DNA of 63,587 bases, the filler included, from Cercozoa sp. M6MM (taxonomy: Eukaryota; Protista; Endomyxa: Ascetosporea), in NCBI GenBank assembly GCA_040357565.1. It is 5 parts of 5 records of this genome, joined end to end, with 100 filler letters (N's around TTAATTAATTAA, not from the genome) between each part and the next. Parts side by side here need not be neighbours in the genome. Positions count along the whole stretch, not along the records: positions 18,944 to 38,092 come from JBDODJ010000217.1; 4 more parts are not named here. One strand, 5' to 3'. This document shows, piece after piece, positions 18,944-38,092 of the stretch. Below the pieces are notes generated by a model that was not told the origin of the DNA, ran no database searches, and was given only the letters and a program-made list of their open reading frames with translations. How positions within the stretch are numbered: the stretch's first letter is position 1; each line of letters opens with the position of its first letter. A program made the translations under genes and the position numbers.

Positions 18944-18989
18944 GGGGGGGGGTAAAGGTGGCAAGGGGGTAAAACGTCTTTGTGTGCAG

Positions 18990-19990
18990 GACCCGAGCTC
19001 GTCGTCGCTCACGAAAATCGACTTGTCCGGCAACCGACTCGAGGAGGACTGTCTGTAGCTTTACCCCCCTTTATCCCCCCTAGCCCCCTACCCCCTTTAC
19101 TTCCCTACCCCCCCTTCCCCGTTAGGCTGGAGTTGTGCGAGGCGCTCAAGTCGAACACGCGTCTGCGTTCAGTGGTGGTAGGACACGTTCGTTATGTTAA
19201 AGTTGAGGTGGCTACACAGTGCGGTGGTACAAGTGTACCCTACGATGGCACTGTGTTTGTGTGTGTGTCCAGATGGACGAGAACAGGACGTCGTTAAGGG
19301 TGCTCAAGGAGCTGAAACGCATTCTGCGCGAGAATCATACCTTGGTCGACCCGGCCATTATTCCGATGAGCGACGTAGCTTGCCTTCCTTCCCTCCTGTG
19401 GCCCCTTAACCCCCTCCCCTTCCCTCCCTCCAGGTGGACCAGACAATGACGCGTCTGTCGCGTGCCGAGAAGGCCGAGTTGAAGGAGACCATCATCAGCA
19501 TCGAGACCGCCGTGGCGCGCAATATGGACGAGGTACGCACGGCCTTTATCCCTTACCCCCTTTACCCCCCTCGCACAGTTCGGAGGCGAGCGATGCGTGG
19601 CGCAGCTGTTGCGTGACACGGTACACAAGTGTGAACCCTCCTCCGTCCCTGTGTCACACCGCTCCCTTAACAAAACCTCTCTATGTCTGGACTGACACAC
19701 AGGGCACGGACTGGCGCTCGCAGTTTCTCGAGCAGCTGTACGGACGTCGCTCGCGCCGCACCGGCTCGGACGCTGATGAAGCGGCCGTCCGCGCGGACGA
19801 GGACGAGGACGAGGACGGCCTACTGCCGCTCCGCGAGGACCGCTTCGACGACGCCGGCGTCGCGGGCGGCGACGACTTTGCCGCGCCCTTAAACAGTCGG
19901 TCGCGTGGCGCCAGTATGGCCATCCGCGCGCAGACCGCCGGTAGCACGGCCTACGCCGCCTCGGCGCGCCTGCGTCGCTACCAGAGCTGA
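18990..19990 (+). CDS. Partial (3') RNI-like leucine-rich repeat protein
   Basis: Spliced SLTKIDLSGNRLEED..LELCEALKSNTRLRSV..MDENRTS. Confidence 0.65.
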
Positions 19991-20891
19991 GCGCGCCGTA
20001 CCGTAATCGCTTGTGCGCACATTAATGCGGCGTATGCACGGCTGTCGTGTACGGTAGTACGGTAGCATGAGTAAAATATATTCAAGAATTGTGTTGTGTT
20101 CAGTCTCAGTACGCTTGCTTCCACACTACTCAGTCAGTCAGTCACAAACGAAAGGCAATCCCGGAAGGAGTAATGTCGTGAGATTGCCAATGCAATTTAA
20201 GTGAAGACAACGACAATTAGGTTCGTTCAAATAAACCGAAAGATAATTTATCAAGTTTCCCCAAGGTAGGGCCGTCGATACAGTTGAGAGTGTGACGAGG
20301 TTTGTTCGAAAGTCAATAAACAAACACCCTCTTGCCTGCTCAAGATAGAGCAAATCAGTTGCTTTGTCAACAAGGACCGGGAGGACGTGTAGGCCATGCG
20401 AAGTCGGAGCGATGCAAATAGCCAAGAAGGACGCCGAAGCCTATCGCGCGCACCCCGCGAGATAGTTCGTTCAGTCTTCTAACGTAAAAACGTTGACTTG
20501 GCGGTACGAAGCCGTCAAACGTGCGTTGGGGTACGGGGTCGTTCACCACACGTCCACGCACACTTCATTGGCGTCAACGTTCGCCCTGCAGCAGTCTCGT
20601 CTCAGTCCTGGTTGGCGTCCAGCGACCCACCGCATCGCATCAAAGTCTCGGGCGTCACACGACGCAGCGAGATAACGACGAGCACCGTGGCTGACTGAAT
20701 CAACGGCAAAATCTATCATGGACGGGATACTTCGCATGTTGTGTGCGCGTACGCGTGCGTAAGGAGACTAGACTAGACCAAGTAATCGAATTTACAGACG
20801 AGACTAGCTCGGCTACATGTACAAAGCAGCTAGCAAATGTCGGTCATCGCGACATCGCTGGGCTGCTGGAGATGGGGTTGCGTTGGTTGCG

Positions 20892-23800
20892 TCACTGCAT
20901 GCCGTCCATTTCGAGCTCGCGCACGCCTTGCTCTAGTGTTAGAAAAAGCAAAACCTTAACAGAGAAGGAACACTGACAAAGAGGTCAACGTACCGCCGTG
21001 CAGCTCAAAGACGGACGGCTGCGGCTCGGCACTGACGTGCGCATACAGCAGGTGCTGCAGCTGCTCCTCCTCGTCCTCCTCGTCGGCAGTGGCGTCCTCA
21101 AATTGCTCCTATCAGAGAGAGAGAACATAGAAGTTGCGATATAAATCAAACTGGTACACTGGAGGGGAGGTAGACAGGGTCACAGACCTCGTACCTTTTG
21201 CGAGTTGAGCACGAGACCAATAAAGAGGTTCGAGAAGAAGAGCGTCACGATGATCGTGTACGACATGAAGTACACCGATGCCGTCCAGCTGGTCGACATG
21301 ATGGCCGCGTACATCACGTCGTGCCAGCCAGCCTGGGAGGGGCACACAAGAGGACGTACCGAAGCTTACAGTGACAAGAGGAGGTATCGATACCACAAGT
21401 AGGTGGAACAAGGCAATGAACGCGTAGGGCAACGACTCAAAACGCGCCTCGGGTAGACGATCCTCTTGCAGACGCGAGTACTCATCACTGATCACCACAA
21501 AAAACAGGTCTCTCAGGTAGCATAAGCGAGGAGTGAGAAGAAGAGCCTACCCGAACAGGTAGATGCCCATGACGCCGTAGACGTAGAAGACACCCAGCAG
21601 CACCAGGAGCATCGACACGAACTGCGGCACAATCTTGGCCAGCGAGAAAACCAGGCGACGCAACGACACCTGTTCGAGAAGGGAGGGATAAAGGAGCGAT
21701 ATGGTAGAGGTAAGGGGACAGGGGGGGGGGGGGGGAAAAGGGCAGGCTACAATAAGCGTGAAGAGTCGCAGGATGCACAGCGTCAAGGCAAAGCGCAGAG
21801 AGTCGTCCTCCTCCTTGTAGGACAGCACGCGACCCGTTGAAAGTCGAGTCACCACTGTCAGCAGCAGCGACAGCAGCACGATGAACGTGTCCACGCGGTT
21901 GGCCATTTGACTGTCCACGCGGAATACCCCATTAACCGAATACAACGAAAAACCACAACTGCACAGGTACCGATCGAGACACGGCGTGTGCATGGTATCG
22001 TGGTGGATAAAACCACGCCAACCCCAGCCAAACACCTTGACTCCAATCTCCACCACCTGTTCGTATACTCAAGTGTAAAGGATGTCGGGGGGGGGGGGCG
22101 GAGGGGCGAGTCTGGGGTACCTGAGCCAGCAGCAGGAAGAACAAGATCTGATCGAGATGAGTAACGTCGTCGGCACCGCCATAGTACGCCATGCACACGA
22201 TCTACTCGAGTGGAGGGAGGCGTCAAAGGGAGAGTGCAAGGAACACCACAGAATAAGTCACCTCGCCCAACACGACAAGCTTCAGCAGCAACACGCCGGC
22301 GGCACCGCCCCAACTGTGTCATACACACAGAAAGGTAAAGCGCTAAAGGAAGTCAACAAGAAGGAAGATACCCAGTCAACAGATTGTCGCGCACCCATTT
22401 GCGCAAAGCGTGCGTGGACAACTGCACACACATATGAAAAGTGAGTGAGGGGGAGAGAGGCAGAGGGTAAGGGAGTAAACAAGGGCAAGCACCTCGCGCT
22501 GTCGCTGTCGCTGTCGCAGCTCGCGCATGCGATCGTCCATGTTGCGCATGTCTGCAATGAGAGACTCGTGAACAGAAAACACGCCCAGCCAAGGCCTGGT
22601 AAATAAGTGGTTGAAAGGTACGGTGCACGAACTCGGTCTTGGTGAGACCCGAGTCGCTGGCGCCGTCTTGACGCTCGTACAGCGAGTCGACGTCCTCGTC
22701 CGCATCAACCTCCATCACGCGACGCAAGAAATCCTAATATAATAGGGAGGGCGTAAAGCCGGTAATAGGGAGGTACAAAGGCACAGCCTACGCGGAACAT
22801 GTCCTCACTGAGCAGGTGCTCAATTTCCTCTTCGGCATTGGCATCCTCGGCATCCGCGCGGACGTGGCCTACCACGGGTTCCTGCTTGGCCAGCACAGCA
22901 TACGCTGCGATCAGTCGCGAGTCGTCAGTCACCTGGAGGGGTACACGGGGTAAAGAGGTACAAGGGGTAAAGAGGTGCACGGGGCTAAACAGCAGTCAGG
23001 CTACCTGCAGCCGCTGGTGCAGCTGCTCGTAGGACTCCTCGAAGCCGTCTTGGAAACGGTCGACGATCATACCTGGGAGCAGAGGAGAGCGTGAGGGTAC
23101 ACGATGACGATCCAAGACAGAGGGCAGACAGGGCGAAAGTCGAGTGTACCCAGGATGATGAACATGCCAAAGACGGTGAAGGCGATGAAGTACACCGTGT
23201 ACCACGGCGACACTTCGTAGGCCGGGTACACCAGTTCCTCATAGTTGTCACCCGTCGAGATGAACACGAAACTCTGGGAACGCAAGGGGTAAAGGAGAGG
23301 ATGGAAGGGACAAGAGGGAGGGGATAAAACAGCCCAGTACCGTCGTCATAGAACGCACAAAGTCGGAGAAGACTGAGCCGGGACTCCAGTCGTCCAGCAC
23401 ACGTCGGAACAGCACAATGCCCATGGCAGCTGCCACGGCCACTACCACCAGGTACAGCAGCAGAACCGTGCGCATGCCGGCCGACGTCAGCGTGCGCCAG
23501 AACGAGGCCACCACGGCGGCGACACTCTCGTTCGTCACCAGCAACAGCAGCGGTCGTAGTGCCAGTAGCCACAGCTCCGTCTGCAGGGAGGGGGGGTCAA
23601 GGGGTCAAGAAAAACGAGGCACTGCGAAGGGCAGACAGTACCCTTGGACCGACGCACATCATGATGACATCGACGATGAAGAACACGATGAGCGCACCGT
23701 GGAACAAGGTCGCCTGCACCGTGCGATCACTGCCGAGCAGGTTGGTGCCGGTGCGCCATAGGATCAGCGCACGTGTCACCCAGTCCAACAGCTCCAATGC

Positions 23801-26800
23801 CTGGGAGGGGACACGAGAGGTAGAGTTAAAAGAAGTAAAGGCAGAGAGACAGGAGCTACCACACACACGCCGGCTATGACCACAATAGCGACGTGCGGAT
23901 CCTCCTCGTCGAAAAAGTCGGGTTCCGCAAAGCCGAGAATGATGTGCACCAGTGCGATAACATTGATGCCGAGCGTCCACCACACTGTATTGCGCATTCG
24001 GTGCAACCACAACAGCCGGCTCGACTGCATGGTCTGCATGGGGGAGGGGGGAGTAAATTGTACATAACCGAAAAAGCTAGGGAATACCTCCAGTCGGCAG
24101 GTAGTCACTATGTTCGACGACTCGTTAAAGTGTGTCGCTGCGCGCTGCAGCCTATCAGGGAGAGAGGTAAGGAACAGTACACAAAAGGGCAAGGAGTAAA
24201 GACGCAGTACTTGACTTGCCGGTCGCCATTGCCGCGCAGACAGGTGTCATAGGCCAGGTGCACACTGCTGGTGACCTCGTGATTGACGAGTTCACTCACG
24301 ACGGCCACGTCGGTACGCGCTGCTTTCTGCGCCAGTCGCGTCTGGTTGTGCCAGCTGCGTCGCTCGTCCAGTTCGTCGTCCAACCAGGCCACACGCAGAC
24401 CTGCACAACAGGAGGGTCTATCAGGAGGGGAGAGGGTAAAGGGGAGACAGAGGCCAGACTACAGTAGTAGATGCCGATGCCGCAGCCAATAGCAACGGCG
24501 AAACGTGTGATGAAGGACAGCATGATGTCGTCGTACAACCATTGGTACAGACCGTCTTGCTTGGGCACAGCAAACACCGACAACCACGGGTTAGAGGACA
24601 CCACGCCATCGGCATCGTCGACGAGGGCGACATACGTGTGCGCACGGTCCACGGCACGCGGCACCTCCTCCACCTCGATCGACCCAGCACCTGCAGGGGG
24701 AAGGGGAGAGAAGGGAAGGTCCGAATGAAAGGGAGAGAGAGAGAGAGAGTGAGACAGGAAAAAGGATACCGGTAAAGTCGCCGATGGAATCATCGCCATT
24801 GGCATCGACACTGGGCAGGAGGTGACCCGACTGACGCAGGAAGGCCGTCGTCTGGCGTACCACCGTGTCCGAGATGTCGTCACCGTATACCACACTACCG
24901 AGGGGGGAGGGGTTGCGGGTAAATACCAAGGGGTAAAATGGGTAGAGAAGTTTATACGCTTGGATTTCTTCGGCCGTAAGTTCGAACGGCTCGCCCTAAC
25001 AGGGGGAGAGAGGTACAAAGGGTGCGTTCAGAAGGGCAACACGCACCTTTTCGTTGAAGAGATCGCCAGCCAGGTAGCGACCCGAACGCTGAAGCAAAAA
25101 CAGACGCTTCATAGGCGACACGCGAAGTCTAAGACGGGTAAAGTAAGGGTGCAATATGCAATAAGGGTGTTTAAAAAAAAGGGGGGGGGGGGTAAGTACT
25201 GCGTGCGACGCAGCACATCGTCGAACACGCTGAGACGGATGTCGATAGCAAACACTCCCGACACGTACTTGCTCTAGGGGAGCAAGGGTGAGGGACAAAA
25301 GAGAGTATAGAAGGAGATTAGCTACTGTACCACAGTGGTGTCATAGTAGTCGCCATTAGCACCGACGCCCGAGTTACTCGGGTCGACCAGCGGCGTACTA
25401 AAGGGAGTGAGAGTAAGGAAGGTAAAACGAACGAGGAAGGTAAAGCAGTACGCCAGAGTGATGCCGAGACCACCGCTCGCGTATGTGTACAATTCACTGC
25501 ACGAGGTAAAGTGAGGTAAAGGAGGTAAAACGAAAAAGTGTATGGAGTATAAGCTTACGTCCACTGCGACAGGTAACCCGGTCGACGGCGACCGATCCAG
25601 TCGAGCCAGCGCGAATCCTTGGGTCCCGTCATGTCCACCTGTCCATGCCAAGTGGTACGTTTGATGGGGGTAGGACTGGATCGCAAAAGGGGCAAAGGAG
25701 TAATACCTCAGACAGACCGGTGGCCTCAAAGAACTCCGTCACAACCTCCTGGGCACGAGAGACCGCCATCGTGTACCTGTCACAGGAGGATGAAGGGGTG
25801 GGTGACGCGAAAGGAGGTGAAGAGGTAAAGCAGCGGGTATGAAGTAGAGACACCAGTTTCGATCGCGTGGGTCAAAGCACAAGTTGCCATCCTCATAGGC
25901 AAACGTGTCTCGGAAGAAGGACAACTTTCGGGCCGCTGTGTTTCAACGAGGTTAATGGGATTAACATGAGTGCTGTGGGTGGGGGGGGGGGGGGGCAAAT
26001 CGCACGCGTGAAGTAGTAGGCCGTGTCGTTGGTGTCGCGGTGCATCACCGTGATGTCCCTGGGCAGAGGGAGTCAGGAAGCGGATGAAGGTAATAAAGAA
26101 AGTGGAGTCTCTACCACCCAGCATTCGTGGTGCCGCTGGCGGCTTTAGTGGCACCGATCATGCGACCATCGCCGCGACCCAGGTACACAGCGTCCAGCAG
26201 CATACCACCTGGACCATCAAGTTAGACAGAGACAGGTGCACAGGTACATCTGGACAGAGAGGTACCGCTGTCGTTGCGGTAAGAGTTCAGCGTGCCCACG
26301 AAGAAGCGGTCAAAGTAGTTGAACTCGGGACCCTGTGGGTATTGCGAAATATAGGCTCAAAGGGGAACGCATCGAGTTACCTCAACGCCACTTGGTGGCA
26401 AGGTCGGCTCGCGCACCTTATCGTCCAGCGCCAGCATGTCGCCGAGGTCGTGTCTGGGGGCGGGGCGGGGAGGGGGTAAGGGTAAGAAAGGGTTGACGGG
26501 AGAGCAGTGGACCCTACCTAGACAACGTGAGCTCCATGACCTGTCGAGCACTCTGCACGTAGCTGTTTGACACGTCCATGTGTCGCCTCGCCGCCTGCAG
26601 CATCGTGCTGTCCACAAAGTCGAAGGTCGCCAGCGACTCCGACGCCAAATGCAAGGCCCACACGACCTGGGTCGGGGGGGGGTACAGAAAGCAGAGGAGG
26701 ATAACACACACACAAGAAAGGAGAAAACTGTACCAACACGATCAAAAAGGCGCCCAGCAACAAACGCGGACAGTTCACCGGTAGTGACAGAAGTAATTTG

Positions 26801-29735
26801 TCCGTGTTCTCCAACTCGAATCTCGCCTGGGATTAAGGAATAAAAGAGGCAACAAATAGGTACGAAAATGAGTCAAGCTACATGCAGACGCTTGGCAAAG
26901 AGACGTGCGTGGTGTTGCTCAGCACGCGACTGATTGGCGCGCGCCTCGTCCAGCAGTGCCTGTGTCAAAGAGAGAGCGGGTGGGGGGGGGGGGGGGATAA
27001 ATGAAATCAAGGAGTAAAGTCGCGGCACCTGCATCTCCTGCACCGACGGGTGGTCCTCCACGAGTTTCTCCACCGCCTTTACTTCCTGGAGAGGGAGGGG
27101 TGAAGTTAAATGGGTAGTGAAGAACTCAACAATAACTGAGATACATCGGCAGGCATCTCGCCCAGGACGGTGACACGCTGACGCAGACTGTCGACGTCCT
27201 CAAACGCCGTCTCGTCGATACCGGCCATATGGGGTGCCTGCAGTCAAATAGAGGTAGAGGGGTAAAAGAGACCAGGAATAAACGGTAAGCTCTCAACGCA
27301 CGCCAGTGTTCTTCGAGATCACACTCTGCATCCACGCTTCGCGAGCCTACTCAACAACGTGCGAGGTAAAGTGGTGCTATGAGAGGGGTCAAAGGGATAA
27401 GACTGCACCAGAGGCATCTGTTCACTGAGCAAGTGAACGCGCCGATCGCGCAGTTCCTGCTCTGCCGTGCGCACCATGCTCTCGCACACCTGCAGAGGGA
27501 GAAGGGATCTCCAACATAAAAGAAGGGACAAAAGCGCACACCTGCAACTCGCAACGCGCCTTCTCCTCCTGTGCCACCGCCGCTGCAAGGGCCTCCTGTG
27601 CAAAAAAAAAGCGAACGGGGTTACAACGAGAGTGTGGGTAAAAGAGAGACTACCCGACGCAGTTGCGCACGCACGCGCATGGCGTGACACTGCGACGGCG
27701 ACACTGCCGCCACCACGCGGTACAGCCAGCGCTCGCGCGTCGCCAGTGGGACCTACGGGAGGAACGAACAGGACAAGATGGTAAAGCAGAGACGTTTAAG
27801 GGTCAAACATACCTCGTAGATGGCAAATGCGGCCACAGCAAACACGAGGGCAACGACGAGGTAGATGGCATTGCTTTCGGTCGTCATCTGACGCAGTTCC
27901 TCCTCACTGTACTCCGTGTCTAGTACCGTCACGACCTTGTACTCCAAACCACCAGACGCGTGCACCGACAGTGCCGACACCCAGTAGCCTGGAAGGTAAT
28001 AGGGAGTGAAGGAAGCTGAATGGAAAGCAAGGGTATAATGAGGTACCATCATCAGTGCGATGAGGCTTCACAATGACGGCATGTCCGTCTTCACCGGGTT
28101 CGTACGACTGCGTCAGTCGGTCGCCCAGGTAGCCCAGTGCATATTGCTCCTGCGCACTCTCGGCGGTTGCGCCTTCCTCAAAGGTGCGAGCCACAGTCGA
28201 CATCTCCTGCTCGAGGAAAAAGGCACAGTGTTGAAGGAGGGCAAAACGGGTCAAAGGTAAAGAGCAAACTACGTCGATGGTGATGAAGGCACAGCCCTTG
28301 CGCGGAATACGCGCGCGCTCGAGTGCCGGTTGCATGTACTCCGGGATCAGGTCAGCAGCCACAATGATCTCGACTCCGGGTCGTGTGCCATTCGGCAGAG
28401 GTGCCAGTGTCACGCGTCGGTAGTCGTGCACCGTCAGACCGCGCTGCTGCAGGTAGTCATAACGCTGCGTCCACTCTGGTCGCTTCGTGTTCAACTACGC
28501 CCACAAAAGATTAAGCTGAGCCTTATAAGGTGAGGAGGCAGAGAAGGAGGGACAACACTCTACCTGAAACCACGGTCGCGAGGTTTGATCGAAGGCACCG
28601 CTGCTGAGGGTCGTGCCCGTGGTCGACAGCGTGCCCTCATCGTCGAGGATATCGTAGGCAATGATCTCCTTGGTGTCTGATGTCTGGTACCGCAGTTGCC
28701 GCTTGCCATCACGTGCGTTTTTCTCGTAGAACACGCCGATCATCTGGTGCGCGGATGCCATGTAGAAGCCCTGTGGGAGAGTACAAGAGGTACAACACGA
28801 CTGAGGGTAAGCGAGATAAATAGATTACCGTGGTTCCGTAGCCGCGTGTAAGTGAGTAGTCGTCTTTGCCTTTGTCCAGGTCGATCGTCGAATTCACCGT
28901 GAATTGCTGCAGCATCACCTCGAACGTCTGCCAGAACGCCCACGCCGGTGGATGTGTCTTATTGCTGCGTGCCACAGAGGAATACGTGACATGGGGCACA
29001 GCTTGGGGGGGGGGGTACAACTGATAGGTGAAGAGAAGTTACCTCGGCGGGTACAAGGCCGTAGTTACATCGCTCGAGTTACTGCTGACAAGGTTCTGGA
29101 AGAAGGAGCCGTCCAGCAGGGTGGAGTGACCGACCGACACGACATCGACGGCTTGTCCAATGTCGCGACTAGCCAGTTCACTCACGCGGTCCTCCGCCTC
29201 GCGCAGCAGTGCCTTGGTCGACGTCGCCAGCGACTCCTGCGTTGGCTGCCGCCAGGCCTCCCAGCCGCCCTACACTCGAGAGGAGTAACAGTTTCAGTCA
29301 ATTAGTCAAACCATGCCTAGACTTACCACAACAAAGGCCAGGATGAAACCGGCGAAGAACACAATGGCCCAAACGGCACGTGGCATGCCACAGTAGCGCG
29401 TTTTCGCCTCCGGTTTCTCTGACTCTTCCTCTTCCTGGGAAAACACGCATACCACAGGTGATCCACCAGGTGACCCACACAGGTGACACCGGCACCTCCT
29501 CCGTGATGACAGGTGGCTTCGCGTCTAACACCGACTGCTCGCGCATGCGCAGTAGCGTGGCCGAGCGGCCCATGACAGCGCCATCACTAAACAAAAGCGT
29601 TCATCAGTTCGGCTTTTCAAATCAGACAAAACAGCGGCGTATTAGAAGTGATTGGGGAACATTAAGAAAAAAGCGAAGTGCAGCAAAACCAAAAAAGGCC
29701 TAAAGGCAGCACCTAGCACTATCATTGTCAGCCAT
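20892..29735 (-). CDS. Fusion protein: TM-dCache-TM-linker-TM-dCache-TM followed by a two-pore channel (2x6TM); about 50 exons
   Basis: dCache1: FDQTSRPWFQ|LNTKRPEWTQRY...IIVAADL. dCache2: AVYLGRGDG, FDPRDRNWY, ELYTYASGGLGIT, GVFAIDIRL, WLSVFAVPKQD. TPC: ILGFAEP, ALRPLLL, FISTGDNYEELVYPAY, VVEIGVKVFGWG, LRLF, FHLLV|AGWHDVMY, FFSNLFIGLVL. Inter-module junctions splice in frame with GT-AG. Confidence 0.82.
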
Positions 29736-31619
29736 GGCCGAAGCGGATCGCCGTAAGCCGCGTGATGGTAGGGCCGCACACTCGGCGTGAGTCTCGTGAT
29801 GTGCTGTATCCCACCGACTGACGAGTTGTCGAACCGCTGAGGAAGAAATTCACGTGCAAGATTGCTTTGATCACGACAACCACTGGGATCAGCCAAACGA
29901 TCAGGCTGCAGGAGCAACTGCAGTCTTTCACGGTCCGGACAGGTAGGTAGTGCAAATGATGGTGTGTTACCGTAATCTGCGATCGAGACACCGGGGATTG
30001 GCCAGCGCCACCATTGTTTTTGGTCCTGCGAGTTTCATAAAACTTAGACATCTGACCTCGTTTGCTTCACGAACAGGGGGATGTCTTAAAGAGCTGCAGG
30101 TTACTGACAGTACTATAACGCGTCTACAAGTACGTCCTGGACAGTGTGTTGTTTTTCTTGTGCCCGCCCGCTCCGACGCTGTGGTGAGTTGCTGGACCGC
30201 AACTGCCGACACTTTTTCAGTTAACGTAGCGCATTCAAAACGGCGACCACTTGGGAGGCACCAACATAGAAACAGTAGCACAGGCTGTACCTAAAGGCTC
30301 GGATCCGAATTGGCCAGGCAGCGACGGCCTGGATGCTGTCGGAGAAAACAAAAACGCGCAAATACGTGTTGCTCGAGACTCATTGTCACAGCTGACGCGA
30401 TACGCTGTCGAAGTTCCTTGTTTGGGCATGTGCAGTTCTTTAATCAAGCAAGTGCTTGTCAGCATCGTCGTCCTCTTGCTGTATCACATTTCCTCCTTCC
30501 GTCAGTATTAAAATAATGGGCGGTCTGTTGTTTGAATTAGTGGAGCGACGCTGTCACTGCTCGCGAGGTCACGGCCATTCGAGACTTTGGATGTTGGACA
30601 ATCCTACGTGCCTATGCGGCTGGAGCAGGAGCAAGGGAACCTCGTTGTGCGCAACCTTCCGCCGCCGTCGACTTCTTTAAACGTAAAAATGAATGATTAC
30701 TAAACTTACATTCCCTTTGCTCTTTATCACTTTCAGTCCAAAAAAGAGTCATGATTCAGCAATGCAAGGCGCACATCGTCGACTTCAAGTTGTGGCCGCG
30801 TTTGAATCCATCGCCATACGGTGGGCTTTGAAGGGGCAAGCTCAAGTTTTCGACACATTTACTGACTGGGGGAGTTTGTGAAACAGGAGTCATAGCGGAG
30901 GGCGCGCATGTCGATTGGACGCTTTCGAATGCTTCCTACTACCCTTTGGTAACGAGACTTAATTTTACTTCTGTACATTATGCATTACTCCTGTACATTT
31001 AATTACACGCATGACACGAGGGCTGTTTAAATCAGAGTTTCCCGATCGACTTTGACAACAGAGCGCAGTTGCATGCGCTAGCTGCTCGCGAGATCTTGGG
31101 TGTGGAAATGATTTTTAATGCCATGCACGGGGACTTATTTAATTGTTCGTATCTCGCAGGACTTGTACCTCCGACAAGCGCACGTGCTCAAGGAGTACAG
31201 CTTGTCACACTGGCCAGCGTTACTGTTTTGTGGCTTTTCACATTGATGGTGCCGGTGCTTGTTTGTAGTGGTGGCACCCCCGTCTGCCGTCGTTGAGCGC
31301 GACGCAGAAAGTCGAGTCGCTCTGGCACCAGGGACGGCTCGTTCCTGTCAGTGTGCTCGTGGAATGTAAATTTTACATCCAGTTTACTGGTCAATTATCC
31401 CCGTCAGTCTGATTATTGGGTGCTCTTGTTTGATCCTAGTGGACGCGAAAGCTGTCACAATGTTCCGCTACCCCAATCCTGATTTTTCGTTTTTCCGTGG
31501 CTGTCAGTTATCGACGCGCGGACGTCCGATTGCGTTACTTTGCCTTTTCGCGTATTTGCTAATTCGTTGATTCACCTTTCGTCACGTCCTTTGTCGTGTA
31601 GCGACGCAGTGTCGTGGTC

Positions 31620-32331
31620 AGCATACATAGCTCGCAGTACAGTGTGGAAACTTAAGCTTGGTCATGCACTCCGAGTGCAGGTAAACAATGAATTTACAAC
31701 GATGCCATTTAACAAAAACCTTCTGAGTGACTTCAGTTTGACTCTGAGTAATAATTTACAGGCACAAGTCATGTGCGTATTCGAAAAAACTGAGTGGACA
31801 AATTTTATCACCGCTAGTCGTAACGACGAGCGCGGAGAAGGTTCAGTTTTTCCTATTCGCCTGCCGTGGATTGCATTGCGTTTTTTGTTTGACCCAGGTG
31901 GCTACACCGTGACGGTGCAACACGGCGGAGAAACTTCGCACCGTGATTGCAAGCCTGCCTTGGAGGTGTCAGTCGACAGCATCGTAAATGTTCTTGGTAG
32001 TCTTTACTGAAAACTTCGTTTTGTGGACAAATATAGACATACCAGGACTGTAACTTTAGAGGGCGAAACCGTCACTTTGGGACTAAACTGCGGAAAGAAC
32101 TGTGTCGTGGCATTGGCTCCCAAACTGTAAATTCAGGACTGAAGTGCTGTACGAGACTCGTCCCTACTATTTCCAAATACTGCAATGTAGGTACGGCGAA
32201 GCTGTTCCGCGACAGGTGGCGCACTGGCTCAAGTCTGTGTTACAGCTGAGTAAGTTAGACGGTGCCATTTTGGGAGTAGTCACCTCGCACCTGGTACATT
32301 TAGTCTTTTTAATGATGAGTTTTTTCTCCTA

Positions 32332-32407
<76 letters not shown>

Positions 32408-34200
32408 ACACACACACAGACACACACACACACACACACACACACACATTACATAGTCCATCACGTACGTACAAAATCAGCTGTGCGAACATGTGAACTC
32501 TCTTTCCTCCCCATCATTTAAAAAAATGAAACTGTTTGTTCAGTTGGGCAAAGATTGTTGCCGAGTACTCGCAAAAACGCGGTTTTTGCCAGTGCACGCG
32601 CCAGCTGCGAAGGTAGACTTACCTTTACCGTGACCCAACTTGACGTTCGGCAGTCGAAGAAACATTACCCCGCTATTTGCGAAGGGCGCCGTCTACAGCT
32701 ACGGTGATGCGTTCGTCGGTACGCACTTGTTGCCGACGCTGGCACGTGCTGTTCACACCGTTGTCTTTGGCGATTGGTATGTCTCTTTTTTTTTATTATT
32801 CCTTCGGCATAAACAAGGTTTGTGCAAACAGGGACGAACTGTTTGAGATCCCGCGTCAAAATCAACGCGCTTTCGCCGCACACACAAAGAATATTGTGCG
32901 CGCACTTATCACTTCGACTTCACAGGTTCTTCTGATATTTTAGGTTTTTACTTCCCCGAGTGGTATACTAAACGTCTGTTCTAGGATGAGATCGAGAAGT
33001 GTTCAAGTGCTCTGATCGAACCTCAATCTGCAGGTATTATGTGACCGGTGGATGGTTTTATCTGATGAGATTCGCGTGTTTTCGCTTTAGTACGCAAACT
33101 ACTAGACTCGAAAGCACGTCGCGACTTTGTCTTGTAGTTTAGATGCTACAGGGGATTAAACCGGATGAACATCGCTGAGTTTTTCGTGTAGAAAGTGGCT
33201 TCACCAGTTCGGTTGTGCGATGACTCTGCAAGGAAAAACGGTACAATAAGTTTACATGTACACTTGGGCGAAAGTTAAATGTGGTTTCTCGGTGAGCAGT
33301 CATGGCGTCCAGAGGAAATGGTAATGTTCCACAACCACGCGGACGACGCTTACTCCAGAGCATGGCGAAAAAGAGGCATTGACGCAACTCCTCGCGGCAG
33401 CAGCGATGGCGCTGTGGTAAAGTGGCCTCTAGATTGGTGTGGAATTTTGAAGAATAGTGGGAAACTTAGCTCGAAGCGACGCAACACGCTGCAAGACACA
33501 ACAAGCACCATGCGCTGTTGCCAGTCAGTTGGCTTGAAGTTCACCTGCGACTCAACACACTCGACAACGTGGACAAAAGCACTTTGGCCGCGTATTGCCA
33601 GCTCACTGCCTATGTCCGAAGGTCTGTGCATATATGTTTATATTCTGGCATGTTTTTGACAGGGCTTACGCAAAAATGAGGGAGTGGTACACTCAGCCTG
33701 AGGTATTTACACACTAATAACAATTCCTAGATTTTCTTCACCTTTTCGAAAAATCGCAGAACGCCTGGAAGGACAATCCAAGCCACGAAGCGCGACGTGC
33801 TTTACAACTTCTGCTGGAGCAGCCAAACTTTGTAAGCAATAACTTTCGGCCACCGACTCGACGTATGTTCAGTTTTGCCCGTAGGAACCCTTCTTGTGGC
33901 ATGCACGTATCGTGAAAAGTCCGGGTACAGTAATTTTTGCCGGAGTGAATGAAGTAGGAAACACGAAGAGTCCCCTTCATTTCTGCAGAAGTTGGTGGCG
34001 TCACGCTGCGTGAGGAACGCGTGCGCGACTGGCATCGTGCGAGACGCGCCGCTAGGGCAGTCAACGGCAGTGCTGAGATGCCATTCCCTGCATCTCTTGT
34101 CGTCACTGGAGATTTTAAGTGGTTCTCTCCCATTTTCCTCTCTCTAAGTTTTGTAGTGACGCAAACACACATTTTGTAGTGACCACGAACCGGCGTGCGC
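31620..34200 (+). CDS. Possible multi-exon gene or pseudogene of unknown function
   Basis: Short open segments bounded by gtaaac/gttcag/gtaagc donors and ag acceptors; no recognisable motif. Confidence 0.25.
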
Positions 34201-34327
34201 GTGCAGTTGCGTCGAGTTTCTTAAACTGGCTCAGCGACTTGAACTCTCGTCCGGTATGGCGAACGCGTCTCAAACCCCCTAGCTTTTTGCCTCAGTCTAT
34301 TCCGTTAAACTTAGTTAAGTGTGTGTT

Positions 34328-34380
<53 letters not shown>

Positions 34381-35096
34381 AAGCAAGTGGCATTGTCAAC
34401 TGTAAAACCGAGTACTATACAAATACTTTTACGTCCACGCGCTGTGCGAATCCTGAGAGATTAGAAGTCCGAATTTTACACGTGCCAATTTCGAAGTCGT
34501 GTTCAGTGAGATATAGAAGTGTCGAAGATTTCGACGCGCGTTCGCTGAAGAATCCTCGAGCAAGCTTTTGCAGCTGAACTCAACGATACAACGCAAGGAA
34601 TATCTCGTGATTCTTCGATCCACACTGTAAATACGGGTCAGTTCAGTTCAGTTTGTTCGACGAACATGTTTTTGATACCGTGCAGTACCCGCAAACCCGA
34701 TCTCTTACATATGCATGCAGTTCGCCCTCGAGTTGCGTTGTCTGTTGCTGCAGTTGGTCTGCTCATACCCAGTGGTGCTCATTGTTGCTGTTTTTGACAC
34801 TGAAAACCTGTAGTACAAGTAATACGGTACCTATTTTTGCCATTAGTTTCAGTAGATCGACTTTACTCACAGTGGCGCCGCTCATGTGGCGGTGTCAATA
34901 CCGTAGAGCGTATTGGATAAATTTACACTCAGGAAGTCGTGCATCCTTTACAGCACTCCTTCGCGCGAGAACACTAACAGACAAGCGCGACTCGTTCACG
35001 TAAGCGTGCGTACTCGGAGTCGGAGAGCAAACAGCTGTAATGCGCCTGGTCCCTGTCCATACAGTTGGCACCATGAAGGCCTGCAGTAAATTACAC

Positions 35097-37594
35097 GGGC
35101 CCTCCCCTATCGTCGGGCCCATAAAAAAACTGTCGCGAAACAAGCTAGTTTTTACCTTTAATGAAGCCTGGGCGTGTGTAGTGATTGTTTAGGCGTTTTT
35201 GAATTGTACTAGATGCTTATTTGTCGAGTTATTGTTGCTCGGGTTTTTGGTTACCCGAGGCAGGCCCGCGCAATCTGTTTTTCTTTATTGGTTGATGTTT
35301 TTCGACATTTGTCGCAGGGTTTTCGAACTTTTAATTGACACATCATTGGCTAAGTTGATGCTCTTTCTCTAGGACGTTGTATTGCTGCTGAGCGAGACGC
35401 AAGGCAGCTGCGTTCTTGGCAACACGCTGCGGTCGTTGCACCTGGTCTCCTGCATCGCCGTCATCGTCCAAGTACATGGCTTGGACCTGTGGGACGAGAA
35501 TTTCGACCAAGTACGGTTCGCCTCGGACGCGTCTTCTTTTTGTCGGCCGCGGATTCTGTGCCAAAAGGTAGAATATTCGACAACAGTACCACGCTGCCCC
35601 AAGCATGTAAAGTTCGAATTCATGTTAAACATAAAGCGAAGATACCTCGTCTTCGCACTCGTTTGACTCGCTGTCATTCTCGTCGAGCAGCGCAATGAGT
35701 TGGTCAACAAAGCGCTGATCGTGAGTGGCGAGCACCGTCACGAGAAGTCCCTCCTGAGTTCGTGTGTTCTTCTCCATTTGTATGCCCTAAATTTAATCAT
35801 TGTGTTCATTGGATATGGGTGATTATATTTTATATGTGCTGTGACACCATAGGGGTTGGTGTATCAGAGTACCTGGGAGAAGAGACAGTGCAGCGCGCGC
35901 TTCCACAGAACAGCTTTCGCTCAGTATCGTCATCGTACTTTTTCAGCTGGCGCGTGTCACGGAAGCGCGTGAGCATGGTTACGGTCTCGTCATCGTGCTC
36001 TCCGATGCGAAAACCGAGGGTAGCGTTGCGGTACCACTGCACGAACGCCATAGCCATGGCGATGCTTGTAGGGTCGGTAACGCCTTTGAGCAGCACGAAC
36101 CTGCTCAGCAGCTGACGCACGTGGCTGTGGCCGCCTTCGGTGCTGTTGGTGTTGATGGTCTTGTTGGCGTCCTGCGTCGACCGCTTGACCCACTCTTGCC
36201 TGTGGTTGACGGACTCCAGACAACAGGCGAGGTCTTCGTGCGTCACGTTAGAATAGTCGATGCCTTTGATATGTGCAATCGCTCTATGGCCACAGGGTAC
36301 GCCTTCCACGAGTCCCTGTGTACCCAATCATACCTCTGTAGTGATTTATGTGTTTGTGTTCTGACAAAGTTTGTGTTCTGACAAAGTGCATGTACGTTTG
36401 AGTTTGGAACAGCGTGGAGCCCGGCTTGATGAAAACCTTGTCCATGAGAACGGGGTAGAAACTCTCGTTGTCTCGCTTCATGGTCACCTGGTACCGGTAC
36501 TCGAGTACGCGCCGAGTCTCGCGCTTATTTTCCTGCGGGATACATGCGCGAGATGATATGTTCTTATTGTGTGTTGCGTGTTGTGCGAAGTGTACAGGTG
36601 TGCTTGTACCTTGTCCCAGAAACGCGCGCACAGAGTCATCGAGAACACCCACACTTCATGTGAGCGCTGTGGACGACTGTGTTGGTTCTTTGTTGGCTTG
36701 TTCTTGCCGAGGCAGAACTACAAAAACTTGGTACTACATCTACATTTTATAAATTATGTGTACCTCGTCAATCTCTCGTCTTGGTTGCTGGCGCACAGAC
36801 GTTCGCCGAGTCGGTACTGCTCCTGACGCAGGCGTTCACTGCGGCCGAGGATTCCGACGCTGCGGCGACGAAGTGACCGCGTCCACCGGGGGCTTTTTTT
36901 CGGACGGTACGAGCCATGCTTGAGATGGTACCTTTGTCCCACGACATCACGTGCAGAGCTCTCAGGTTCTGACTGAGAGAGCCGCTGCCGTGCGACAAGA
37001 CTGTGTGAAAGCCGTCGGCTTGGCTTGTCGACAGGAAGATGCAGACCTTGCAGCACTTGCTGTTGCGTGCTGTGTTGCCGTCACGCTTCGTTGCTGTACA
37101 GCACCAGGCCAGTTTGTGCTCGTCGGGAGCTGCGCACCTTGAGCACAAGCTTTCGCTCACAGTGCTTGCAGCTCGGAACGTCTTCTCCGCGAACGCTTTT
37201 GTGCAAGTGCTCCTGCAACACAGTATCAAATATATTCACTGCTTGATGTTTTTTTCTATCGTGTTTATGTACCCGTAGTGCCTCAAGCAGGGTTTCCTCT
37301 TTAAGCTTCGCAAGTTCGTCTGTTGTTTGTGCAAAATGCAAGATTTAGAGCGATTCAGCAGGCGTTTTCTTCTTCTTGTCGGCACTCATGTTTTTTCTCG
37401 CCCAACGAAATTTTTGATTTTCTGTCGACGCGCCCGATCGCTAATGATGCTCTGCACACTGCTATTGTATTTATAGAGCACACACTGGGGGTCAGTGAAA
37501 AGTGCTATCTTTGTAAACTGATCAACATGAAATCTACTTGTTGGCTCAGTTTTATCGGCTCACTATTTTTACCCGACGATACGGTAGGATTCCC
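35097..37594 (-). mobile_element. Merlin (IS1595-like) DNA transposon, 2498 bp, imperfect TIRs, 9-bp TSD AAATTACAC
   Basis: TSD at 35088-35096 and 37595-37603. Left end gggccctcccctatcgtcggg versus reverse-complement right end gggaatcctaccgtatcgtcggg. Internal transposase motifs. Confidence 0.85.
35343..37341 (-). pseudogene. Intron-containing, frameshifted Merlin/ISXO2 DDE transposase
   Basis: CKHC..WCC zinc ribbon; EIDE|FCLGKNK...EVWVFS; IKPGST..TDSWKAY; SVNHRQEWV...INTNSTEG; frame breaks near 37125, 36775 and 36270. Confidence 0.82.
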
Positions 37595-38092
37595 AAATTA
37601 CACTATCTGGGGTATCTGTCCGAACGCCCCTATCCGAGTTAATCAATACTTCGGGCACCCCAATTGTTACTGCGACTCAATGGCCAATCAGTATGGGAAA
37701 GGAGAGACTAAGTAAATCATTCAATTAGATAAGTCGTCACTCAGTAGGGGAAATACCCCTACTGGGTCTCGAAGTGATCCCACTGGATCTCGACCGAAGA
37801 AAGACGTCCTTGGTCGTAACAATGCGTTTATGAAAGAAAAAACTCCGCCCTGTGAACACACGACGAAGTGAGTGGAATGGAAACCAGCCAATGAGCTAAC
37901 TGACCAGGCTGAAGCCGTGACGGAGCTTTCTGCTTCTCTGCAAGGACTCTGTCCAGGCAAGATCTACAGCAACAGCAATCCACTAAGTCAGTAGTTAGGT
38001 CTCAGAGCAAGGTACCAAGCCAGAACACTCTTAAACGTCTTTCCTGTCTCAAACTTGTTTGAGACATAGATTATGACCTCCACGCGGACGGG

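Follow-up and report, generated by a model that had tools for sequence, protein, structure and literature searches.

A two-pore-channel-like protein with two dCache-type ectodomains in the amoeba M6MM: a candidate chemoreceptor channel

The window analyzed here is a stretch of 63,587 nucleotides (nt), joined from five records of the genome of Cercozoa sp. M6MM (GCA_040357565.1), in which positions 18,944 to 38,092 derive from record JBDODJ010000217.1. On the minus strand of this part lies a single gene whose predicted product combines two ectodomains of probable dCache type, each placed between two transmembrane helices (TMs), with a complete channel of two six-TM repeats that resembles two-pore channels (TPCs). 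The hand-spliced frame is identical to the deposited protein MES1912185.1 (MHM6MM_004502; 1847 amino acids, aa), which GenBank lists as "hypothetical protein" and which, labeled P0001, is the reference for all protein analyses. Exact codon-by-codon mapping yields 52 exons and 51 introns. All introns run from GT to AG and measure 48–126 nt, mostly 55–70 nt, and because 51 consecutive canonical short introns each restore the frame, a chance origin of this frame is excluded. The initial annotation had proposed one continuous frame from TM1 into the channel, and this frame equals the deposited model. Its limits (29735..20892, including the stop codon) are reproduced, and the junctions recur exactly: the critical intron 24401–24462 (62 nt, phase 1, GTAGTC..GTGCAG) yields YYC/LRVAWLDD, intron 24152–24210 yields RQVK/LQRAATHF, and intron 26667–26733 splits TM3 across exons.

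M6MM is an amphizoic marine amoeba from fish gills that has been placed in Apofilosa (Rhizaria) (PMC11069148; PMC13746701) and now bears the name Lemnamoeba sinaloensis (PMC13746701). The genome is small, very compact, 84% genic, and very rich in simple repeats, and the strain is kept in culture (PMC13746701).

From the N-terminus onward, the protein is arranged as TM1, module 1, TM2, a 189-aa cytosolic linker, TM3, module 2, TM4, a 98-aa junction, and two 6-TM Ion_trans repeats (Table 1). Modules 1 and 2 are spread over 6 and 15 exons, respectively. The four extra hydrophobic helices at aa 58–76, 433–451, 641–659, and 1072–1092 reach Kyte–Doolittle values of 1.9–2.45 in a 19-residue window, and the K/R counts beside TM1–TM4 obey the positive-inside rule with the modules outside and the channel N-terminus inside. 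By hydropathy and positive-inside rule, both modules are extracytoplasmic, bracketed by two TMs, with a C-terminal TM in the position for signaling. Module 1 carries four and module 2 two N-glycosylation sequons. The topology claimed earlier, with both sensors on the outer or lumenal side and a cytosolic channel N-terminus, is thus backed by hydropathy and charge, and the claim that one gene encodes two Cache-type ectodomains flanked by TMs, together with a complete TPC-like channel of 2x6TM, holds.

Table 1. Positions of the coding sequence and of the predicted parts of the encoded protein within the window
Feature	Position	Strand	Basis or remark
Whole coding sequence, 1847 codons + stop	20892..29735	-	exact mapping of P0001
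N-terminal cytosolic segment, aa 1-57	29378..29735	-	K/R-rich flank ahead of TM1
TM1, aa 58-76, spans an intron	29264..29377	-	hydropathy 2.42
Module 1, aa 77-432, probable diverged dCache_1-like ectodomain	27867..29263	-	profile and language-model matches
Module 1 motifs	FDQTSRPWF 28567-28593; WTQRY 28459-28473; IVAADL 28348-28368	-	
TM2, aa 433-451	27750..27866	-	hydropathy 2.43; BLASTP alignment to bacterial dCache_1 protein collinear into its TM2
Cytosolic linker, aa 452-640, charged	26764..27749	-	11-14% identity to homologues (poorly conserved)
TM3, aa 641-659, intron-split	26640..26763	-	hydropathy 2.45
Module 2, aa 660-1071, predicted dCache_1 ectodomain	24527..26639	-	hhalign, BLASTP, phmmer, language-model features
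Module 2 motifs	FDPRDRNWY 25773-25876 (across intron); WTELY 25487-25563 (across intron); GVFAIDI 25238-25258	-	
TM4, aa 1072-1092, followed directly by 62-nt phase-1 intron 24401-24462	24464..24526	-	hydropathy
Cytosolic junction from TM4 to channel helix IS1, aa 1093-1190	23995..24463	-	8 columns invariant across three homologues
Channel repeat I, 6 TM	23062..23994	-	Ion_trans
Pore I + S6 exon, filter T-G-D-N + PAY motif	23150-23273	-	only TPC1/TPC2 chains matched in PDB
Inter-repeat cytosolic linker, aa 1414-1560	22292..23061	-	EF-hand pair degenerate here, weakly seen in homologues
Channel repeat II, 6 TM	21198..22291	-	Ion_trans 1.4e-33
Pore II, V-A-G-W where homologues have G-E-G/A-W	21303-21423	-	matches Cav3, Cav1, Nav, BacNav in PDB
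Acidic C-terminal tail, aa 1796-1847	20895..21197	-	

A search with the channel part (aa 1150–1847) identifies two environmental proteins, P0003 (2107 aa, 1.4e-81) and P0004 (2506 aa, 1.5e-57), far above all Cav and Nav matches. In both, four extra N-terminal TMs bracket two ectodomains and are followed by the 2x6TM channel, collinear with M6MM. P0003 lies above the Pfam cut-offs for dCache_1 (48.2 bits; cut-off 45) and MCP-like_PDC_1 (40.2 bits; cut-off 27), with two stretches for each family, the position of the second not being shown. P0004 matches dCache_1 with E 2e-7 and 31.2 bits, which is under the 45-bit gathering score. The N-terminal halves of these two proteins have no detectable 5-mer words in common with M6MM. 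With the N-terminal halves of P0001 and P0003 as queries, only the queries themselves were matched in a search that admits candidates of 0.55–1.75 times the query length, is silent on shorter relatives, and uses a 5-mer word filter for which the modules have diverged too far. Because two distant environmental homologues have the same layout, the Cache-channel arrangement is, as judged from these gene products, a small family and no annotation accident. In P0004, module 1 reaches 683 aa and contains a Cys-rich insert (aa 650–830) with EGF-like matches and 29 Cys, which shows that the family can accommodate large insertions in its sensor ectodomain.

The dCache_1 fold consists of a double PAS-like (PDC) unit with a long N-terminal helix. 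Two dCache_1 and two Ion_trans matches had been expected for the spliced protein. In Pfam, both Ion_trans matches appeared and were the only significant ones in P0001, while dCache_1 stayed at E 0.17. Pfam on the M6MM protein alone would thus formally reject the Cache assignment, a verdict that is reversed by the homologues and by profile tests, in which profile-level homology to dCache_1 was found for both modules. Pfam on 30 stop-free minus-strand segments likewise gave weak Ion_trans matches only and no Cache, with exons too short to tell much.

For module 2, pairwise comparison with phmmer already connects M6MM to P0004 (3e-13) and P0003 to P0004 (5e-18). Moreover, BLASTP aligns aa 732–840 of P0001 to one bacterial dCache_1 locus at 1e-8. 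A profile of the three module-2 sequences matches the dCache_1 domains of two bacterial open reading frames (ORFs), L008 and L009, with an hhalign probability of 98.4% and E 8.8e-15 over 200 columns; these loci were picked from a metagenome scan by a 9-residue family motif, which renders the E-values somewhat flattering, although the alignment far exceeds the pattern. Both ORFs encode dCache_1-HAMP-PAS-GGDEF-HD proteins and exceed the Pfam dCache_1 cut-off. The match extends from the N-terminal helix through the distal to the proximal module. In language-model features, both M6MM modules fall amid dCache_1, MCP-like_PDC_1, and HK-sensor clusters at 0.96, a similarity to be read against shuffled proteins, which reach 0.95 about once in 100. 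Module 2 is therefore almost certainly a dCache_1 domain.

Module 1 is more diverged. Its pairwise phmmer comparisons give E 0.27 or worse, hhalign against the bacterial pair alone yields 4.6% (E 0.009), and a 196-aa module-1 stretch (27907–28494; aa 265–391 plus translated intron) finds no real relative beyond P0001 itself (98% identical) among 1.84 billion representative proteins. These three results would speak for an unrelated ectodomain of similar size, which would leave module 2 as the single Cache sensor. Against this stands a combined hidden Markov model (HMM) of module 2 and the bacterial domains, which scores the three module-1 sequences at 21.9 (M6MM), 19.3, and 15.2 bits, compared with 4.7 bits for the best of 600 shuffles. 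Further, hhalign of module 1 against the combined dCache profile reaches 88% (E 3.1e-6), the module-2 HMM detects module 1 at E 5e-4, and the alignments are collinear across the RxW, WTxxY, and GVxxxD motifs. The language-model neighborhood and the two dCache_1 and two MCP-like_PDC_1 stretches of P0003 argue in the same direction. Module 1 is thus very probably a diverged paralogue of module 2, and an unrelated ectodomain is improbable. The search of the 196-aa stretch also returned the fish protein P0002 (Metynnis hypsauchen, 2837 aa), which was rejected as a relative: its 26 matches all concern one 18-residue stretch of translated intron (residues 130–147) and constitute a repetitive artefact.

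TPCs are characterized by an uncharged Asn/Ser/Thr filter, a dimeric assembly, and an endolysosomal or vacuolar location. P0001 resembles them in its two Ion_trans stretches (1.4e-33), that is, two 6-TM repeats in one polypeptide. All 60 matches listed for P0001 in a phmmer search of the PDB are channels, and AtTPC1 (218–678) aligns with aa 1326–1798 in one stretch that covers pore I, the linker, and repeat II (8e-10). With the pore I and S6 exon as query, 12 of 12 PDB matches are TPC1 or TPC2, at E 0.1–0.4 for this short query. Pore II, in contrast, is Cav-like, and over the whole protein Cav3.2 (8e-26) scores above AtTPC1 (8e-10). The homologues carry acidic, Cav-like filters (TGD/TGE in pore I and GEGW/GEAW in pore II). 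Pore II of M6MM is one residue shorter than theirs and lacks the filter Glu, and no in-frame alternative splice that would restore this Glu was found in the DNA around the acceptor CCCAG/GCAGGCTGG at the exon 49/50 junction (21394/21332). This pore therefore suggests an ion selectivity unlike that of its relatives. In the inter-repeat linker, P0003 and P0004 show weak EF-hand matches (E 0.004–0.07, below Pfam cut-offs), while the M6MM segment is degenerate. Consequently, the label TPC given to this channel initially stands for the architecture and pore I and fails for pore II; "TPC-like" is right in that sense, and the channel as a whole would be assigned to the TPC/Cav superfamily. A further environmental channel relative, L001 (Ga0206123_10040317, 273–2454), is 29% identical to P0003; its pores carry the signatures TGEN and GEAW, and its inter-repeat linker contains two clear EF-hand loops. 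The 2.5-kb contig of L001 opens with a simple repeat and has a stop codon upstream of the junction-like region.

The sensor and channel halves could have been joined by annotation only, as a fusion of two adjacent genes, one for a double-Cache receptor with four TMs and one for a separate TPC-like channel. Neighboring genes lie close in this very compact genome (PMC13746701), and the gene was modeled automatically with funannotate; the annotation did, however, make use of transcriptome reads (PMC11069148). At the locus itself, nothing but the canonical 62-nt GT-AG intron of phase 1 separates TM4 from the junction exon. The frame continues uninterrupted through exons 33–34, where no in-frame Met precedes aa 1179. 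In addition, P0003 and P0004 are single proteins with a collinear arrangement of the same parts, and since their N-terminal halves are too different from M6MM, they were not joined by homology to it. The eight invariant columns of the junction likewise speak for continuity. The intron style is the same in the sensor and channel halves, and this uniformity speaks against both an assembly chimera and contamination by bacteria. We therefore regard one gene that encodes one protein as strongly favored and two fused genes as very unlikely.

Within the gene, the 72-nt intron that separates exons 39 and 40 consists mostly of a 17-bp unit repeated 2.9 times (22940–22989). The 8.3 kb upstream of the gene (29800–38092) have a G+C content of 47–50%, compared with 55–58% in the gene, and contain simple repeats, namely (CA)58 at 32333–32448 and (GT)30 at 34319–34378. 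ORFs of 113–165 aa in this region have no Pfam match, which is odd for a genome that is 84% genic, though rich in simple repeats (PMC13746701), and the region could contain an intron-rich gene. Downstream of the stop codon (18944–20700), G+C amounts to 57–61%, a C-rich 25-bp repeat occurs at 19065–19113, and the ORFs are again without a Pfam match. Ten ORFs that flank the gene gave nothing in Pfam.

The published amino-acid motif of dCache_1AA domains comprises Y121, R126, and W128 (YxxxxRxWY) together with Y144 and D173 (PMC8915833). Mapped by motif and alignment, and not by structure, the corresponding residues are F816, R821, W823, Y824, Y876, and D921 in module 2 and F255, R260, W262, F263, Y276, and D312 in module 1. 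Both M6MM modules thus keep R, W, Y, and D of the motif. In module 2, these ligand-contact positions are invariant in all three proteins, and P0004 has an exact YDPRTRVWY. Because both M6MM modules retain these residues, the ligand is most likely an amino acid, or else a carboxylate or amine related to one.

We favor a receptor-channel, with a probability of about 65%, in which a dCache_1 pair would sense a small ligand and bias the 2x6TM pore via TM4. Bacterial dCache receptors are homodimers with a four-TM bundle in which the helix after the sensor carries the signal (PMC8915833). Since two probably paralogous modules and four TMs share one chain in M6MM, as four TMs come together in bacterial homodimers, an intramolecular pseudo-dimer is suggested. 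The two modules would pair within the chain and imitate the bacterial homodimer, while TM1–TM4 would form a four-helix bundle in the membrane. A small ligand, most likely of the kind just named, would bind to the membrane-distal pocket and, in the manner of bacterial chemoreceptors, displace TM4. Through the conserved 98-aa junction, this movement would then reach repeat I and bias pore opening. If the channel dimerizes like TPCs, four sensor modules would surround each pore. Both S4 helices are charge-poor, and ligand control therefore fits better than voltage control; ligand gating itself is what we infer from these features.

A complex prediction of module 1 with module 2 gives an ipSAE of 0.47 compared with 0.00 for the best control, with runs that agree in at least 54% of contacts and a partner pLDDT of at least 59. 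The mark applied to this score is reached by 51 of 78 solved complexes and by 2 of 108 mismatched pairs, and unless a pairing is likely beforehand, the majority of passes at or below 0.60 are wrong. The prediction thus lends weak support to module pairing.

The main rival accepts the fusion and assigns the modules a different role, that of a built-in auxiliary subunit for folding, trafficking, surface retention, or matrix contacts, without acute ligand gating. The sole Cache-channel partnership known in animals is auxiliary (PMC8915833). The poor conservation of module 1 and of the TM2–TM3 linker would agree with such a role, as would the EGF-like inserts of P0004, which are typical of adhesion and matrix proteins, and the absence of the motif Arg from module 1 of both homologues. 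Other features are at odds with it: the modules are of bacterial type and TM-flanked without a VWA match, module 2 of all three proteins retains R, W, Y, and D at the positions of ligand contact, and conserved columns follow TM4 in the junction. In bacterial dCache receptors, moreover, it is the TM after the domain that transmits the signal (PMC8915833). We consider the auxiliary role rather unlikely, though less so than the other alternatives.

A number of points weigh against a ligand-gated receptor-channel. The dCache_1 match of P0001 in Pfam (E 0.17) has 11.8 bits, spans aa 912–962 against profile positions 140–191, and falls short of the 45-bit gathering score. The double-PDC fold of both modules is inferred with the sequence as sole basis. 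The complex score is weak and may merely echo memory of solved dCache dimers, and the modules could be structural, as in alpha2delta. In the pocket, the first motif residue is F instead of Y in both M6MM modules, and the motif Arg is missing from module 1 in both P0003 and P0004. Compared with P0003, P0004, and bacterial dCache_1, module 2 of M6MM carries a 31-aa insertion between RxWY and WTxxY (25559–25776, exons 24–25, aa 823–872), which represents a lineage-specific loop unless the exon model as deposited contains a small error. An amino acid or similar ligand is thus a reasonable guess from the motif residues, with other options left by the Tyr-to-Phe exchange and the insertion. With regard to the channel, the best PDB match of P0001 among those listed is Cav3.2, over four stretches, and the M6MM filters, T-G-D in pore I and V-A-G-W in pore II, deviate from the uncharged Asn/Ser/Thr type of TPCs. 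Finally, the case for one continuous transcript is drawn from the deposited annotation and the homologues rather than from reads, and P0003 and P0004 are known as gene calls.

The ligand-gated receptor-channel can be extended further, on a more tentative footing and at somewhat less than even odds. M6MM may possess an unrecognized class of eukaryotic ligand-gated channel, in which an amino-acid-sensing dCache_1 pseudo-dimer directly gates a TPC/Cav-like pore through its C-terminal TM and which would serve a phagotrophic protist as a chemoreceptor channel for prey or phagolysosomal amino acids. Among the extracellular sensors of bacteria, Cache domains are the commonest, and to our knowledge their function in eukaryotes is largely unknown outside alpha2delta and CACHD1, which are gabapentinoid targets and separate auxiliary subunits of Cav channels. 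If the interpretation is true, the protein would be a covalent counterpart of the alpha2delta-Cav complex, and Cache domains would be tied to this channel superfamily by an older and more direct link than thought. It would also represent a new principle of ligand gating among voltage-gated-type channels, a directly testable model for coupling Cache ligand binding to such a channel, and a route from amino-acid signals to cation or Ca2+ flux in amoeba chemotaxis or phagolysosome signaling. Experiments are feasible, since the M6MM strain is cultured and its genome is small (PMC13746701).

The initial annotation took the fusion to be undescribed, and no prior description emerged from full-text literature searches. 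No paper in these searches combines dCache_1 with Ion_trans, the protist protein list in the supplements of PMC8915833 being outside their scope, and "Cache domain" together with "two-pore channel" retrieves only an alpha2delta review. The sensor-channel combination is thus found in no paper of the literature searched.

The closest functional parallel is offered by alpha2delta and CACHD1, in which dCache_1-type ectodomains are likewise functionally attached to a channel of the voltage-gated-cation superfamily and the same R, W, Y, and D motif positions are involved (PMC8915833). In contrast to M6MM, alpha2delta is a separate protein with a VWA inserted in its dCache_1, nested and anchored by glycosylphosphatidylinositol (GPI) or a single TM. 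The M6MM modules stand in tandem, each between two TMs as in bacteria, without VWA and within the pore-forming chain. Searches for VWA and VWA_N gave no match in P0001 (E up to 10) or in P0003 and P0004 (E up to 0.1), which sets all three apart from the alpha2delta/CACHD1 group. A survey that is the largest of eukaryotic dCache_1 domains describes all of them as carrying a VWA insertion and as alpha2delta/CACHD1-like or kinase-linked (PMC8915833). The three VWA-less proteins contradict this generalization.

With the TPCs (plant TPC1, animal TPC1/2, and coccidian TgTPC), the M6MM protein shares two Ion_trans repeats per chain, and AtTPC1 aligns over both; in the PDB, pore I and S6 with the PAY motif match only TPCs. 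Plant TPC1 carries EF-hands in the inter-repeat linker, the same place at which P0003 and P0004 show sub-threshold EF-hand matches. We know of no TPC with an extracytoplasmic sensor domain or four extra TMs. The M6MM family further differs by its acidic, Cav-like filters, with VAGW in pore II of M6MM itself, and by whole-protein scores that favor Cav3. Coccidian TgTPC has an extended N-terminus that is unexplained (PMC8490419).

Bacterial dCache_1 receptors and sensor enzymes (PctA type; L008 and L009) have the same succession of TM, long helix, double PDC, and TM, and significant homology that includes the FDPRxRxWY, WTxxY, and GVxxxD motifs and the G-x-aromatic 'flv' segment. Unlike these, the M6MM protein has as output an ion channel in the chain, and not a kinase, MCP, or cyclase module. 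Its sensors are arranged in tandem in one chain instead of as a homodimer, and it is encoded in a eukaryote, by a gene with 51 introns. The only known fusions of a Cache domain to a channel concern prokaryotic Cys-loop channels, which occur joined to MCP-N/Cache or PBP domains and have been proposed as chemoreceptor channels (Tasneem et al, 2004; PMC549065). These share with M6MM the covalent fusion of a Cache sensor to an ion channel and differ in being pentameric members of an unrelated superfamily, prokaryotic, equipped with a single sensor, and of other topology.

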